Positions 15,788 through 20,342 of a DNA stretch of 64,000 nt are shown piece by piece. A model generated the notes under the pieces. The model made no database searches. It was given only the letters and a program-made list of their open reading frames with translations, and had not been told where the DNA came from. A program made the translations under genes and the position numbers. Numbering within the stretch: position 1 is the stretch's first letter; every line of letters starts with the position of its first letter. Where the stretch lies: sequence record LR756501.1. One strand, written 5' to 3'.

Positions 15788-16360
15788 ATGTTAACGAAAT
15801 TTGAATTATTTTTGGAAGGTAAATGGTTTGGAGGCGGTAGAGCAGCAAAGGCTGGCCCTAATGCTCCAGTTGTTGTTCCTAATCAAGAGCAAGCAAAGAA
15901 AAAAGTTTACGATAAACCAGATGATGATATAATAGAATGGATGATTAACTATCTTAAAAAGACTGGTGTTGATGAGACAAAATTAACTGATGATTATAAT
16001 TTATCTCCAAAAACTTTTGAACCTAAACAATGGTGGGAATATAAATTTATAAAACAAGGAAAGACTAATCCATTGGATCCTTACGGTGAAGAAGATTGGC
16101 CAGGAGCTACTGGTAATAAACAGATTAATATAAGAATAGAAAAGAGATCTCTACTTGGTGACAAATATGAATATTATTATAGGTTCAAAGTTAATGATAA
16201 TGATTTAGATGTATCTGAAAAATATATTAAAAGAATAGTAGAATTACTTGACGCCCCAAAAGAAGCAAGAAGGTTGGCGAGAGAAAAAAGGGAGGCTGAA
16301 GCTAAGAAATCCAAGAATGACGCAATAAGAAGAGATTTATTTGAAAAAAGATCGAAATAA
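15788..16360 (+). CDS. Hypothetical protein with CTS-like N-terminus and DPYGEEDW
   Basis: MLTKFELFLEG...LDPYGEEDW; TAATATATAG at 15774-15783. Confidence 0.75.
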   Translation: MLTKFELFLEGKWFGGGRAAKAGPNAPVVVPNQEQAKKKVYDKPDDDIIEWMINYLKKTGVDETKLTDDYNLSPKTFEPKQWWEYKFIKQGKTNPLDPYGEEDWPGATGNKQINIRIEKRSLLGDKYEYYYRFKVNDNDLDVSEKYIKRIVELLDAPKEARRLAREKREAEAKKSKNDAIRRDLFEKRSK

Positions 16361-16738: not shown

Positions 16739-17122
16739 ATGTCGTAGATTTACAAATTAATCGTAGTAACAAGACAAGATCTTACCCCTGGCTATCAAGC
16801 CACACAGGCAACTCACGCCGCATTATTATTCGCACAAGAATTTCCATAGATTTATGAGCAGTGGTCAAAAGACCCTTATTTAGCTTTGCTTTCTGTTAAG
16901 AATGAGCAAGAGCTTCGTATTCTCATATCCAAATTAGAAAAATCCAAAATCAAATTTTCAGTATTCAGGGAACCTGATATTAACAATCAGATTACCGCTA
17001 TCTGTATTGAACCTTCTGAAGCATCCAGAAAGGCTACTAGCTCTTTGCCCCAAATGTTAAGAGACTTGAAGACTGAGAATCAGATTGATAAAAATAATTA
17101 CGTAAAGGAGGAAGTATTATGA
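16739..17122 (+). CDS. PTH2-fold (peptidyl-tRNA hydrolase 2 / PTRHD1-like) protein with two in-frame amber codons
   Basis: AAAAGGAGA SD, ATG 16739; MS*IYKLIVVTRQDLTPGYQATQATHAALLFAQEFP*IYEQWSKDPYLALLSVKNEQEL...FREPDINNQITAICIEP; TAG at 16745-47 and 16847-49, in frame with track ORF 16886..17122. Confidence 0.82.
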
Positions 17123-17729: not shown

Positions 17730-18190
17730 AAACTTATAAAGAAAAAACAACAACTTACGTCCCTAAAGAAATTGAGGTAGATGTTTGGAAAACAGATGAT
17801 GGTAGAACTTTCAGAAATGAAAATGAAGCTATTAAACACGAAGAATGGCTCAACAAAAGAAAATCAATATCAAATAAATATAAATGTAAAGATATTTATA
17901 CAGACGATTATGGTATCTCAGTTGATAGTGGTTGGGAAACATCAGCAAAAATGATGTACATTGAAAAACTTGACGATGAAACTATTAAAGATTTGATGGA
18001 ATTATATGAATATTTAAAATATAATGGAAGACAATTAAAGGATATGAAACCAGGTTGGAATATTTTTGTCGAATCTGAATATGATTCAAACTCTTGTAGC
18101 AGATGGGGAGGTTATGATTTAAGTATCTATAATGTTAACGATGTTATGGAACAAAAAATAAAACAAATAGAAAGGTTAAAAGAATTATGA
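17726..18190 (+). CDS. Hypothetical protein
   Basis: WKTDDGRTFRNENEAIKHE, a common phage N-terminal motif; ATGA overlap. Confidence 0.7.
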   Translation: MKTYKEKTTTYVPKEIEVDVWKTDDGRTFRNENEAIKHEEWLNKRKSISNKYKCKDIYTDDYGISVDSGWETSAKMMYIEKLDDETIKDLMELYEYLKYNGRQLKDMKPGWNIFVESEYDSNSCSRWGGYDLSIYNVNDVMEQKIKQIERLKEL

Positions 18191-18567
18191 AAGAATTAGA
18201 AAATGTTAAAATGTTGTATGGGTCAGGTTGGTGGGACGGCCCTTTAAGTGGGCTTTGTGAATATGAAAATAAAATGTATTGGTTTAGTGTTCATCAAGAA
18301 GAAGAGTATGACGAAGAGAAAGAAGAATGGGGATATAGAATTCACAAACTTATTGAAATAGAACCTTGGCAATTAGCTTATGAATTATATTGGCATAGTG
18401 TGTTTGTGAGTAATGTTTACAGAAATGCAAAATGCAGAACTCAATTTGAAGAAAATCTAAAAAATGAAAGATTCTATATGAAAGAAGATTTCTACAAGAA
18501 AAGGAAAAAAGAACATAAAGAGATAGATTATAGTAATAATAATGTTATTGGAACATTTAAATTTTAA
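18187..18567 (+). CDS. Hypothetical protein
   Basis: WWDGPLSGLCEYENKMYWF; ATGA overlap. Confidence 0.7.
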   Translation: MKELENVKMLYGSGWWDGPLSGLCEYENKMYWFSVHQEEEYDEEKEEWGYRIHKLIEIEPWQLAYELYWHSVFVSNVYRNAKCRTQFEENLKNERFYMKEDFYKKRKKEHKEIDYSNNNVIGTFKF

Positions 18568-18583
18568 AAGAAAGGAGAACGAT

Positions 18584-18607
18584 ATGTCGTAGAGTAGGCC
18601 GCCTTAA
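18584..18607 (+). promoter_or_regulatory. Amber-containing leader mini-ORF (M-S-amber-S-R-P-P-ochre)
   Basis: AAAGGAGA SD at 18571-78, then ATG TCG TAG AGT AGG CCG CCT TAA; same first 10 nt as the PTH2-like gene. Confidence 0.7.
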
Positions 18608-18640
18608 AGGTGATACAGAAAACCAGCAAAACAAGTTTAA

Positions 18641-18671
18641 TCACTATCGACTTGTAAATAAAAGATAGTGA
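18641..18671 (+). promoter_or_regulatory. Hairpin downstream of the amber leader, with competing pairings
   Basis: TCACTATC(18641-48)/GATAGTGA(18664-71); ACAAGT(18631-36)/ACTTGT(18650-55); GGTGAT(18609-14)/ATCACT(18640-45). Confidence 0.5.
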
Positions 18672-18703
18672 ATATAAAACAACAAAAAATAAAATATAAA
18701 ATT

Positions 18704-19120
18704 ATGGAAACAACATTAAAAGCTGGTGTTACGTACACCTATAATAGAAGTGAATTAGACAAGAAAATCTGTGATACTATTAATTTTATCAAAGAAGTAA
18801 TCGCGAAGAATGATTACCAAGTAAAAGGAAACATTGAAGAACTTTACGTTCTTGAGTACCCTAACTTATCAATGAATCAGATGAAGAAGATTCAGAAATA
18901 TTGTTACTGGATTCAGAGGAATCCTTCTTTGAAGAAGATCAATACTTTCTTTAGTTTATTATCAAAACTCTTTGGGGTTGAGAGAGTACAAGTGAAAATT
19001 TCTTTGAAAGAAGAAGCTATCCAGAAAGCTAAGAAAGAATGGATCAAATCTAGAAATGAAGCCGATAGACTTTTAAAGGCTTATAAGGATGAAAAAGGTG
19101 ATTTTTACAAAAGAAAATAA
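18704..19120 (+). CDS. Hypothetical protein behind the amber leader
   Basis: Probable start METTLKAG at 18704 (track GTG at 18668 lies inside the hairpin); C-terminal EEAIQKAKKEWIKSRNEAD...EKGDFYK helix. Confidence 0.75.
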   Translation: METTLKAGVTYTYNRSELDKKICDTINFIKEVIAKNDYQVKGNIEELYVLEYPNLSMNQMKKIQKYCYWIQRNPSLKKINTFFSLLSKLFGVERVQVKISLKEEAIQKAKKEWIKSRNEADRLLKAYKDEKGDFYKRK

Positions 19121-19147
19121 TTTTTTAGTTTAAAAATTATATGTATA

Positions 19148-19172
19148 TTTGTGGAGTGAAATTCTCCACAAA
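19148..19172 (+). promoter_or_regulatory. Perfect 9-bp hairpin abutting the first tRNA, overlapping a TAnnTTTG element
   Basis: TTTGTGGAG-TGAAATT-CTCCACAAA; TATATTTG at 19144-19151. Confidence 0.6.
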
Positions 19173-19173
19173 T

Positions 19174-19246
19174 CCCTCGTTAGCTCATTTGGAAGAGTGT
19201 CAGATTCTAGCTCTGACGGTAGTAGGTTCGAATCCTACACGGGGGT
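19174..19246 (+). tRNA. Amber suppressor tRNA (anticodon CUA), copy 1
   Basis: Acceptor CCCTCGT/ACGGGGG, D arm GCTC/GAGT, anticodon arm TCAGA-TTCTAGC-TCTGA (CTA at 19207-09), T arm GTAGG-TTCGAAT-CCTAC. Confidence 0.9.
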
Positions 19247-19251
19247 CAAAA

Positions 19252-19326
19252 CGGATAGTAGCTTAGCCAGGCCAAAAGCATCGGTCTCTAAAACCGATAT
19301 CGAGGGTTCAAATCCCTCCTATCTGA
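19252..19326 (+). tRNA. Amber suppressor tRNA (anticodon CUA), copy 2
   Basis: Acceptor CGGATAG/CTATCTG, D arm GCTT/AAGC, anticodon arm TCGGT-CTCTAAA-ACCGA (CTA at 19288-90), T arm GAGGG-TTCAAAT-CCCTC. Confidence 0.92.
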
Positions 19327-19418
19327 CTAAAAATAATCACCCTGATTATCAACGTCTTCTTACGTTTGCCCCCATTTTAGAAAAAACTAGTAAAAAAGTT
19401 TAATATATACTCAGGTAT

Positions 19419-20342
19419 ATGATTAAGCGTACTTTATTCAAAACAAAAAAGCCAGGTGTATCTCAAAGGGATAAATCTGGTTTTTTTATTGCGAACAAAA
19501 AAACATCAGTTACTATGGGAAAACGTAAGAACAACATGCTTTCACCAATCAACGCTGACGAAGATGTCCTTGATGCTGTTTGCAACCACCGACGCTTTAC
19601 ATCAGATGCTATCTTTACCAAGAAACAATACGGTGAAGTCCTTCTTAAAAAAGTAAATTTGAAATGTAAAAATCAAAAACAGAAGGAATTCGTCAACATG
19701 ATCGAGGAAAAAGAGATCATCATCTGTGTAGGAGAATCGGGTGTGGGTAAAAGCTATTTATCAATAGCTAAAGCATTAGAGTTATTAAAAGACTCGTCTA
19801 AGGGGTATGAAAAAATCTTCATAATCACGCCAATCGTTGAATCAGAAGATAATATTGGGTTTTTGAAAGGATCACTCACAGAAAAAATGGATCCTTATTT
19901 ATACTCAATCTATTATCTTATTGATAAAATGGTAGGTGAGGATACTAGAAAAAAGTTGGTTGATAACGAAATTATTGCACCATTGTGTATATCATACTTG
20001 AGGGGGGTGAATATAGACAACGCTATTTTAATTTCAGACGAAACGCAAAACATGACCATAAAAGGAATTAAGACATTACTTACACGTATAGGTTTTAATT
20101 CGAAGTTTATTCTTTCTGGGGATATTAACCAGATAGATAGGTTTAAAAATGAGAACGAGTCAGGTCTAAAATATGCTTATGAGAATTTGAAGGATATTGA
20201 AGGAGTCGGTCTATTTGAATTTACCAAAGAAGATATTGTGAGAAATAAAATCATAGGTCAAATTCTAGACAAATTTAAACCAAAACCCATTGAAGTAACA
20301 CCACCTGTGGTAGTCAAAAAGAAAAAGGAAAAAATAGAGTAA
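19419..20342 (+). CDS. phoH: PhoH family ATPase
   Basis: GESGVGKSYLS, YLRG, ISDETQN, LTRIG, SGDINQID, DIVRN. Confidence 0.93.
   Translation: MIKRTLFKTKKPGVSQRDKSGFFIANKKTSVTMGKRKNNMLSPINADEDVLDAVCNHRRFTSDAIFTKKQYGEVLLKKVNLKCKNQKQKEFVNMIEEKEIIICVGESGVGKSYLSIAKALELLKDSSKGYEKIFIITPIVESEDNIGFLKGSLTEKMDPYLYSIYYLIDKMVGEDTRKKLVDNEIIAPLCISYLRGVNIDNAILISDETQNMTIKGIKTLLTRIGFNSKFILSGDINQIDRFKNENESGLKYAYENLKDIEGVGLFEFTKEDIVRNKIIGQILDKFKPKPIEVTPPVVVKKKKEKIE

Follow-up and report, generated by a model that had tools for sequence, protein, structure and literature searches.

A conserved leader peptide with an in-frame amber codon as a candidate sensor of stop-codon suppression in giant phages

Phages that carry suppressor tRNAs are thought to change how a stop codon is read during infection, but how that change is timed or monitored is an open question, and the main survey of recoded phages describes no cis-regulatory sensor (Borges et al., bioRxiv 10.1101/2021.08.26.457843). 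We asked whether such a sensor may exist in a 735-kb phage, in a window of 64,000 nucleotides from record LR756501.1, where a mini-ORF encoding M-S-amber-S-R-P-P-stop precedes a gene of unknown function and two tRNAs with anticodon CUA. The original prediction was that the ribosome leaves at codon 3 if UAG terminates, whereas under suppression it stalls at Arg-Pro-Pro-stop, covers GGTGAT and switches competing hairpins ahead of the downstream gene and possibly of the tRNA pair. Our literature searches for a described amber-containing leader in phages found none.

Conservation of the leader and its module

The observation itself proved exact, including every coordinate that had been given for it. 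A Shine-Dalgarno (SD) sequence AAAGGAGA at 18571-78 is followed after five bases by ATG at 18584, then TCG, TAG, AGT, AGG CCG CCT at 18596-604 and TAA at 18605-07. ATGTCGTAGA also starts the PTH2-like gene at 16739, and these are the only two exact occurrences of ATGTCGTAG in the window and the only two GGAG-N(4-10)-ATG-NNN-TAG sites. The three pairings that had been named, GGTGAT with ATCACT, TCACTATC with GATAGTGA, and ACAAGT with ACTTGT, are all present. Taken alone, however, the local fold is not exceptional (MFE −19.2 kcal/mol, z = −1.66), as 11 of 200 shuffles fold as well, and a loose version of the mini-ORF pattern also occurs once by chance inside a gene in this window, at 15823.

What places the element far beyond chance is its conservation at the orthologous position. 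The lack of a conserved leader upstream of homologs of 18704..19120 had been named beforehand as an outcome that would overturn the idea, so we collected homologs of this gene, here called the METT family, giving 81 non-redundant loci at 29-74% identity. In 66 of them a mini-ORF of the form M-x(1-5)-UAG-x(1-6)-(R/K)-(P/G/S)-P-stop lies 41-164 nt upstream on the same strand (96 nt in the window), against 0.135 expected from shuffled sequence (maximum 1). Its density in these upstream regions is 3.2 per kb, compared with 0.01 per kb in the rest of the same loci. About eight more loci carry variants, and further variants and contig-truncated copies were seen by eye. The leader is thus conserved in dozens of very different giant phages. 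In contrast, the clade without a leader (loci L070, L071, L073 and L074) gives METT its own SD.

The UAG and the (R/K)-P-P-stop ending are the conserved parts of the leader. As a TAG was required by the search pattern, its presence in all 60 distinct leaders is by construction, but the base that follows it is A in 47 and G in 11. The last two residues are PP in 44 of 60, GP in 9 and SP in 5, the residue at −3 is R or K in 52 of 60, and the stop is TAA in 54 and TGA in 6. Pro is the last residue before the stop apart from a trailing Thr in the RGPT group, although a final CCN was also part of the pattern. The basic residue is coded by AGA, AAG, CGA, AAA or AGG and the Pro codons use all four third bases, suggesting selection at the level of the peptide. 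Initiation signals follow the clade, with AAGAAAGGAGG in near relatives and A-rich sequence without SD in distant ones.

The leader belongs to a recurring module composed of a tRNA(CUA), a PTH2-family gene with its own UAG at codon 3-6, the leader, and a UAG-free 140-aa orphan protein (Table 1). A tRNA(CUA) lies on the same strand within 600 nt downstream in 53 loci, and upstream within about 2 kb in many others. For the PTH2-like gene, a profile of 39 homologs, built from the part after the early TAG, hits the solved Pth2 proteins 2zv3 (E = 2.2e−10), 24bt (3.1e−09) and 1rzw (2e−08), covering 4-104 of 115 profile positions. The single piece in the window is only weakly similar to Pfam PF01981 (E = 0.0079, below the cut-off); catalytic residues were not examined. 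The METT family comprises at least 211 clusters, all hypothetical. Searches with Pfam on 54 members, with a profile against PDB, and with Foldseek against PDB and BFVD using an AF2 model (pLDDT 86.8) gave no hit or structural neighbor, and PHROGs on the window copy gave one weak match to a family of unknown function.

Table 1. Features of the leader locus, in window coordinates
Position	Strand	Feature	Supporting observation
16739..17122	+	PTH2-family peptidyl-tRNA hydrolase homolog; in-frame TAG at codon 3 (16745-47) and codon 37 (16847-49); same SD core and first 10 nt as the leader	Early in-frame TAG in 51 of 52 distinct homologs
18571..18579	+	SD of the leader (AAAGGAGAA), 4 nt after the stop of gene 18187-18567	AAGAAAGGAG(G) conserved before the leader ATG in all near relatives
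18584..18607	+	Leader mini-ORF M-S-UAG-S-R-P-P-UAA	Orthologous mini-ORFs in 66 of 81 loci
18590..18592	+	In-frame amber codon (putative sensor codon)	Followed by a purine in 58 of 60 leaders
18596..18607	+	Arg-Pro-Pro-stop, putative termination-arrest site	A C-terminal Pro-Pro motif impairs termination (PMC3834316)
18609..18614	+	GGTGAT, inside the footprint of a ribosome at the leader stop; can pair with CGCC of the Pro codons or with ATCACT 18640-45	Pairing with 18640-45 only weakly conserved
18631..18655	+	Stem S1, ACAAGT(T) 18631-37 with (G)ACTTGT 18649-55 (named pairing 18631-36 with 18650-55)	RNAalifold consensus; 7 of 7 sub-lineage sequences pair, without variation
18641..18671	+	Stem S2, TCACTATC 18641-48 with GATAGTGA 18664-71	One C-G to U-A compensatory pair and G-U changes; not statistically established
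18672..18703	+	A-rich, SD-less 5' leader of the downstream gene	Unpaired probability 0.75
18704..19120	+	METT family gene: 138 aa, basic (pI 9.6), helical, C-terminal YKxEKGDFYK; function unknown	No TAG codon
19144..19171	+	TATATTTG (TAnnTTTG, a Bacteroidota-type −7 box) and hairpin TTGTGGAG/CTCCACAA just before the tRNAs	Motif in 13 of 34 METT-to-tRNA spacers, against 5.8% background
19174..19247	+	tRNA with anticodon CUA (amber suppressor 1)	ARAGORN; Rfam tRNA 57.8 bits
19252..19327	+	tRNA with anticodon CUA (amber suppressor 2), the type found next to METT genes in relatives	ARAGORN; Rfam tRNA 63.8 bits

Predicted pairing between the leader stop and the downstream start codon

We next asked what a ribosome on the leader might do to the RNA. 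In 50 of 66 relatives the stop region of the leader is predicted to pair with the METT start codon. The mean duplex is −9.7 kcal/mol against −3.7 for random segments of the same locus, with 50 of 66 loci at or below the 5% level and 38 of 66 at or below 1%. Part of the CCA-UAA/UUA-UGG complementarity is built into 'Pro-stop' and 'AUG-G', so that non-cognate pairs also score well, but cognate pairs average −9.74 against −7.62 for non-cognate pairs, with 0 of 10000 permutations as low. Folding under a ribosome-footprint constraint, which had been suggested as a check, gave an unpaired probability of the start region of 0.41 for free RNA, 0.41 with a ribosome at the UAG and 0.66 with a ribosome at the leader stop. 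The rise exceeds 0.3 in 32 of 66 loci for the stop and in 0 of 66 for the UAG.

The original prediction is only partly supported. The anti-start helix is absent from the window (duplex −2.2 kcal/mol against a control mean of −3.3), where the start region is 75% unpaired in every modeled state. The helix is likewise absent, and modeled accessibility unchanged, in the rest of its sub-lineage (loci L044, L046, L014, and weakly L018, L054 and L059), although the leader is conserved there, so the helix cannot be the whole story. Whether a stalled ribosome frees a sequestered start is thus predicted for most relatives but not for this sub-lineage, and the modeling does not decide the matter for the element as a whole. 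The hairpins originally named have only weak support. Covarying stems had also been proposed as a criterion, and only TCACTATC/GATAGTGA shows any covariation, with one compensatory pair plus wobble changes in 7 sequences, a score equaled in 48 of 500 shuffles. By eye, locus L051 has a different pairing sequence here, GCATAAT with GTTATGC. GGTGAT/ATCACT is not supported as a conserved switch arm, since 79% of cells are paired, about as many as with the partner slid by +3. S1 and S2 have the order of an H-type pseudoknot and could form together rather than compete.

No terminator-like site or promoter was found in 18568-18703 and the hairpins are followed by A-rich sequence, so the element is not a classical attenuator of the trp/his type. 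An Rfam search of 18000-19600 at a permissive threshold returned only the two tRNAs and nothing on the leader or spacer. Fusion of the leader to METT by read-through, bypass or a prfB-type frameshift is rejected, because five in-frame stops separate the two ATGs in the window and spacer length is a multiple of 3 in only 21 of 60 leaders. Control of the tRNA pair is also unsupported, as the tRNAs have their own promoter-like box and hairpin.

A proposed reading and its alternatives

Taken together, these data suggest that the element is most likely a translated leader ORF that reports whether UAG is being decoded, a reading we hold with reasonable though far from complete confidence. What the comparisons themselves show is the conserved architecture: a start signal suited to each clade, 1-5 codons, an in-frame UAG followed by a purine, and 4-7 more sense codons ending in (R/K)-(P/G/S)-P and a stop, upstream of a UAG-free orphan gene beside tRNA(CUA) genes and a UAG-gated PTH2 homolog. 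The mechanism is inferred. Without suppression, RF1 would end translation at codon 3 and the ribosome would leave; with a charged suppressor tRNA, it would read on to Pro-Pro-stop, where termination is slow, and dwell there. In most relatives, as judged by complementarity, cognate versus non-cognate comparison and footprint modeling, the stalled ribosome would cover one arm of the long-range helix that otherwise hides the METT start codon, so that METT would be made only when suppression works. A C-terminal Pro-Pro arrests termination in all contexts tested (PMC3834316), and RAPP, RGPP and RAGP arrest cores are known (PMC12992588). Nothing here is experimental, and translation, stalling and suppression are all inferred. 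As METT has no known function, the sign and purpose of the regulation were not checked. In the window the sensor half is intact and still under selection but the masking helix is missing, so the output there must differ or be relaxed. The S1/S2 hairpins or pseudoknot, Rho access, and mRNA stabilization by the stalled ribosome are candidates among which our data do not choose.

The best-surviving alternative, possible but clearly less favored, keeps the sensor and changes the output. As in the tna operon, a ribosome stalled at Pro-stop may block Rho from the RNA just downstream, or protect the mRNA from decay, so that transcription or stability of METT is controlled. This could be the main output in the sub-lineage of the window, which keeps the leader without the helix. 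The leader ends in Arg-Pro-stop-like sequence, the 96-nt spacer 18608-18703 is long, A-rich and little structured (A53 C11 G11 T21), and a synthetic switch with a UAG placed in a tna-type leader works this way (PMC6412442). However, the spacer is not C-rich and lacks a terminator-like site, and the strong, covarying helix in 50 of 66 relatives points to a translational output there; Rho utilization and Rho dependence were not tested.

It would seem unlikely that the logic is inverted, with the regulatory state being a ribosome waiting at a 'hungry' UAG because RF1 is low or inhibited and the suppressor scarce. The UAG does lie very early in every leader found, as in the PTH2-like gene, but the conserved residues follow it, so translation beyond the UAG is under selection, and a modeled ribosome at the UAG opens the start region in none of the 66 loci. 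Slightly less likely still is a minigene or decoy whose short peptidyl-tRNA drops off, or whose translation is itself the point, for example by supplying substrate for or working with the phage PTH2 homolog, without cis control of METT. Short ORFs are prone to drop-off, as in the lambda bar minigenes, and a PTH2 homolog is part of the module, but this does not explain the fixed position upstream of METT, the complementarity to its start, or the SD in the leaderless clade. A chance ORF, untranslated RNA motif or remnant of the PTH2-like gene's start is very unlikely: the element is only 24 nt long and shares its first 10 nt with that gene, but it is conserved with changing codons and has no Rfam match.

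More speculatively, and as a tentative possibility only, the leader, METT, the UAG-gated PTH2 homolog and the tRNA(CUA) may form a portable, self-checking 'genetic-code switch' cassette, in which the leader measures UAG read-through and METT, released only when suppression works, reinforces or exploits the new decoding state, for example by antagonizing RF1 or licensing late functions. This would give a bistable, timed switch and be the first natural regulatory circuit whose input is the meaning of a codon.

Related systems and the genomic setting

The element resembles arrest-peptide leaders that unmask a downstream start site, such as SecM-secA, MifM-yidC2 and ApdA/ApdP/ApcA with RAPP/RAPG cores (PMC12992588, PMC10951233, PMC7897499), in that a small upstream ORF ends in an Arg-x-Pro-Pro-like sequence and, in most relatives though not in the window itself, the stalled ribosome is predicted to melt a helix over the next gene's initiation region. 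Here, however, the input would be read-through of an in-frame UAG rather than protein export, and the motif abuts a stop codon, so arrest would occur at termination rather than elongation. RPP/KPP lacks the middle residue of RAPP: the window has S-R-P-P, and across leaders the endings are xRPP/xKPP (the majority), RxPP (6 of 60, as RYPP, RHPP and RNPP) and IRGP/IRSP/IRAP (10), which are similar but not identical to the published core and do not settle whether the leaders belong with these peptides. The peptides have only 7-12 residues, far shorter than those arrest peptides, and published RAPP-type arrest needs an adjacent N-terminal region in the exit tunnel (PMC12992588), so any stall, which was not assayed here, must rest mainly on Pro-Pro or Pro-stop termination.

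TnaC also ends in Arg-Pro-stop, with regulation resting on slow release-factor action on peptidyl-tRNA(Pro) at a stop codon (references in PMC6412442). TnaC senses free tryptophan through conserved Trp12/Asp16 and acts through Rho, whereas here there is no such peptide, the conditional step would be decoding of a UAG, and in most relatives the output looks translational. In prfB autoregulation an early in-frame UGA likewise serves as a kinetic sensor of termination against an alternative decoding event, but prfB senses RF2 through a +1 frameshift within one ORF, while here the alternative event is suppressor-tRNA decoding and the leader is a separate ORF whose frame is unrelated to the regulated gene. 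The element is also a natural counterpart of the synthetic 'unnatural amino acid transcriptional switch' (PMC6412442), in which downstream expression requires translation beyond a UAG inserted into a leader. That device was engineered from the tna/trp leaders, while this one is widespread in phage metagenomes and has its own architecture.

Phage 'code-change modules' of suppressor tRNA, aaRS and release factor similarly cluster a suppressor tRNA with protein-coding genes that avoid the recoded stop (Borges et al., bioRxiv 10.1101/2021.08.26.457843), but the text of that paper does not mention leader, attenuation or peptidyl. Here the module has a PTH2 homolog and METT instead of an aaRS or release factor, plus a sensor ORF, and the 735-kb phage is essentially standard-code. 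Suppressor tRNAs in phages may therefore serve a regulatory circuit even where bulk recoding is absent. The leader is a concrete, testable candidate for a sensor, and the leader, METT and the UAG-gated PTH2 homolog are three targets for further study. No second SD-bearing leader was found in the whole 735 kb. Of other apparently UAG-gated genes in the genome, the 'early TAG' ORFs in L126 and L127 are mis-called starts, and two ORFs with 54 and 47 TAGs in L132 are wrong-frame artifacts of a repeat gene. Compared with the 27 tRNAs found in one 50-kb piece of the genome (record 150001-200000), the two suppressor tRNAs have no clear parent, with best matches of 66% and 75%.

The mini-ORF and its conservation

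The window forms the last 64 kb of LR756501.1, a 735,411-bp uncultured phage (100% identity), with a G+C content of 30.8% and no N. All of the coordinates and pairings listed in the original prediction were found to be exact, so the observation itself holds. The leader reads ATG TCG TAG AGT AGG CCG CCT TAA and starts five bases after its Shine-Dalgarno (SD) sequence, AAAGGAGA. It is separated by an A-rich spacer from a gene we call METT, after the N-terminus of its protein, and two tRNA genes with anticodon CUA lie 57 nt after that gene. The same SD core and the same ATGTCGTAGA open the gene at 16739, and these are the only two SD-ATG-NNN-TAG sites in the window. However, the local fold on its own is unremarkable (z = −1.66), an Rfam search returned no match to the element, and no terminator-like site was found.

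Coordinates of features in the window and in the phage record
Feature	Position	Strand	Detail
PTH2-family homolog	16739-17122	+	in-frame TAG at codons 3 and 37
SD of the leader	18571-78		AAAGGAGA
Leader mini-ORF	18584-18607		amber at codon 3
Spacer			96 nt, A-rich
Two spacer stems	18631-18671		possible H-type pseudoknot
METT gene	ATG 18704		138 codons
TAnnTTTG box	19144-51		TATATTTG
TAnnTTTG box and hairpin	19144-19171
tRNA(CUA), first	19174-19247
tRNA(CUA), second	19252-19327
ORF with TAG stop and nearby TAA	10720-11595
ORF with TAG stop and nearby TAA	13672-14187
ORF with TAG stop and nearby TAA	34225-34947	minus
ORF with TAG stop and nearby TAA	45359-45880
DPYGEE-x-W motif	11098; 16076; 45180; 62322	+
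DPYGEE-x-W motif	26439; 26214; 24620; 5306	minus
27-tRNA cluster	record 150001-200000
Proline-rich repeat region	record 403661-408904		3661-8904 of L132, a piece of the phage record

Conservation upstream of homologs of the downstream gene had been named in advance as a test of the original prediction. To carry it out, we used the METT protein and its upstream neighbor as queries and recovered relatives from viral and metagenome contigs, giving 124 sequences in all counting the window and 81 non-redundant upstream regions. These relatives (loci numbered with the prefix L) range down to 29% identity and come from contigs of up to 636 kb, many of them above 100 kb. The mini-ORF was already present in the first five relatives read by eye, for instance, MS-amber-IKPP in L002, MY-amber-VKPP in L004, MS-amber-RNKSP in L005 and MKPYL-amber-IIRPP in L001. 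We then searched for a strict pattern consisting of ATG, 1-5 sense codons, TAG, 1-6 sense codons, CCN, an optional ACN, and TAA or TGA. This pattern occurs in 66 of 81 upstream regions, while shuffled sequences gave 0.135 regions (maximum 1) and the rest of the same loci, on both strands, gave 7 hits in 700 kb, all inside genes and without the motif.

Most of the 15 misses are explained. L045 was a mis-called gene start and its leader is MT-amber-TKPP, while L009 and L112 are cut by the contig end but show CCG CCC TAA and CCC CCG TAA, respectively. Five other loci carry longer or variant forms: L103 ends in I-R-S-P and then uses TAG itself as the stop, L027, L116 and L042 continue for 2-13 codons past the RSP/RGPT motif, and the fifth is L037. 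In L091 (Ga0180438_10405857), a leader-like ORF about 130 nt upstream of METT has TAA in place of TAG (ATG AAA GAA CGC TAA GTA CAA ACA CGA GGT CCG TAA), and is either a dead copy or a hint of an ochre-reading relative. L084 and L097 show no leader. The clade of L070, L071, L073 and L074 also lacks the leader, and there METT follows AAATAAGGAGAAAAAAC, that is, it has its own Shine-Dalgarno sequence (AAGGAG), although the same clade still has a tRNA(CUA) downstream.

Leader anatomy and neighboring genes

Among 60 distinct leader sequences, TAG is codon 3 in 36 and codon 5-7 in 24, and it is followed by a purine in 58, which is the context that favors amber suppression. The next residue is Ile or Val in 48 leaders, and four to seven sense codons separate the TAG from the stop, which is TAA in 54 and TGA in 6. 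The last two residues are PP (44), GP (9), SP (5), AP (1) or DP (1), with Arg or Lys at −3 in 52 and the remaining leaders being R-x-P-P. The basic residue is coded by AGA, AAG, CGA, AAA and AGG, and the Pro codons use all four third bases; selection therefore acts on the peptide and not merely on the RNA. Further, the initiation signals follow the clade, with AAGAAAGGAGG in near relatives and A-rich sequence without an SD in distant ones.

The genes around the leader form a recurring module. METT genes never contain TAG, and about 62 of 65 end in TAA. A tRNA(CUA) lies on the same strand within 600 nt downstream in 53 loci, and in many others it lies 0.2-1.7 kb upstream. A homolog of the window's gene at 16739 is present in 85 loci, and 51 of 52 distinct copies carry an in-frame TAG near the start (codon 3 in 33, codons 4-6 in 14, and codons 9-16 in 4), so its synthesis appears to be gated by amber suppression. 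The style of that N-terminus tracks the leader's in each clade (M-S-amber or M-K-x-x-amber), and the identity of the first 10 nt pointed out in the original prediction is therefore part of a general pattern. A profile of the parts after the TAG hits solved Pth2 proteins at E = 2.2e-10, so this gene is a genuine PTH2-family member. METT itself is a family of at least 211 clusters, all annotated as hypothetical, with no Pfam domain. It is basic (pI 9.6) and confidently predicted as helical (pLDDT 86.8), and no structural neighbor was found in PDB or BFVD.

A proposed readout of amber decoding

MFE folds of all loci showed one recurring feature. In distant clades the end of the leader itself (CCA UAA N) pairs with the METT initiation region AUUAUGGAAAC, while in near clades a box, GUUUCCAUAAU, 2-5 nt after the leader stop does the same. 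The duplex energy between the leader-stop region (−9 to +18) and the start region (−12 to +12) averages −9.7 kcal/mol, compared to −3.7 for random segments of the same locus, with 50 of 66 loci at or below the 5% level and 38 of 66 at or below 1%. Cognate pairs beat non-cognate pairs (−9.74 against −7.62), with 0 of 10000 permutations as low. The arms therefore co-vary beyond the shared CCAUAA/UUAUGG core, for instance, CCAUAACUGUG with ACAGUUAUGG, CCAUAAUUG with CAAUUAUGG, and UCCAUAAUGGUGUG with CACACCAAUAUGGA. In partition-function models with a ribosome footprint blocked, the start region is 0.41 unpaired when free, 0.41 with a ribosome whose A site is on the UAG, and 0.66 with a ribosome at the leader stop. 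The rise exceeds 0.3 in 32 of 66 loci for the stop and in 0 of 66 for the UAG.

Published work shows that a C-terminal Pro-Pro impairs termination and arrests ribosomes in every context tested (PMC3834316), and RAPP/RGPP/RAGP cores are known arrest motifs (PMC12992588). Given these data, we infer that without suppression the ribosome is released at codon 3, the helix stays intact and METT is off, whereas with suppression the ribosome would reach and dwell at Pro-Pro-stop, the helix would melt and METT would be translated. Of this scheme, our analysis demonstrates the conserved anatomy, the complementarity and the modelled accessibility, while translation, suppression by the neighboring tRNAs, the stall and the sign of the effect are inferred. 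The original interpretation, a leader that senses amber decoding and switches competing structures ahead of METT and possibly the tRNA pair, is supported only in part.

The element works like the arrest-peptide leaders (SecM, MifM, ApdA/ApdP) in the output predicted for most relatives, like TnaC in placing Pro at a stop codon, and resembles prfB in using an early in-frame stop as a kinetic sensor. It is not a member of any of these families: the peptide is too short for the RAPP class, there is no intrinsic terminator, and there is no frame link to the regulated gene. Full-text literature searches found no description of this element, and the survey of recoded phages describes code-change modules but no leader. 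An engineered switch with a UAG placed in a leader peptide does exist (PMC6412442). We therefore consider the element to be a regulatory leader ORF whose probable input is the decoding of a stop codon.

The window's sub-lineage and genome context

The window is an exception to this pattern. The box is missing in the window and in L044, L046 and L014, and it is weak in L018, L054 and L059. The duplex is −2.2 kcal/mol against a control mean of −3.3, and the start is 0.75 unpaired in all modelled states, although relatives only slightly more distant (L045 and L058) keep the box. The leader is still under selection in this sub-lineage (S-R-P-P, V-K-P-P and I-K-P-P, with the TAG and PP-stop kept), so the sensor half is secure here while the output half in this phage was not resolved. 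The spacer instead carries the hairpins of the original prediction, whose covariation had likewise been proposed as a check. ACAAGT(T)/(G)ACTTGT is invariant and is the RNAalifold consensus, and GGTGAT/ATCACT is weakly supported. TCACTATC/GATAGTGA shows one compensatory C-G to U-A pair plus G-U changes and by eye has an entirely different pairing sequence in L051, but with 7 sequences this is not significant (48 of 500 shuffles). From the order of the arms of the first and third of these stems (S1-5′, S2-5′, S1-3′, S2-3′, with loops of 4, 1 and 8 nt, the third A-rich), we infer that they fit an H-type pseudoknot rather than competing hairpins, an arrangement specific to the window's sub-lineage and L051.

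Control of the downstream tRNAs is not supported, as they are preceded by a TAnnTTTG box and a hairpin of their own. This box occurs in 13 of 34 METT-to-tRNA spacers in relatives, against 5.8% background, about 30 nt before the tRNA, and is followed by a hairpin that ends just before the tRNA 5′ end. It looks like a Bacteroidota-type promoter plus a processing or terminator hairpin, which hints at the host phylum. The two tRNA(CUA) genes are quite different from each other, and neither resembles any tRNA of the 27-tRNA cluster elsewhere in the record (best 66% and 75%); the amino acid that each inserts was not identified.

We also read the rest of LR756501.1 and found that, of 501 ORFs of at least 150 aa with TAG read as sense, only 7 have a central TAG. 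Two of these are wrong-frame artifacts of a repeat gene, leaving about 5 with a possible internal TAG. The artifacts arise in a long proline-rich repeat region (VPDVPLVP) where several frames stay open, and the real gene is probably the 1900-aa ORF on the minus strand. Twenty ORFs have TAG only near the C-terminus followed by a close TAA, where TAG is simply a stop with a backup, and ORFs with an early TAG elsewhere are mis-called starts. Only the two tRNAs in the window have anticodon CUA, out of 59 tRNAs. This phage is therefore essentially standard-code, and the leader and the PTH2 homolog are the only clear clients of its suppressor tRNAs. Finally, the peptide motif DPYGEE-x-W recurs 103 times in six-frame translations of the phage genome, in many otherwise unrelated-looking small proteins.
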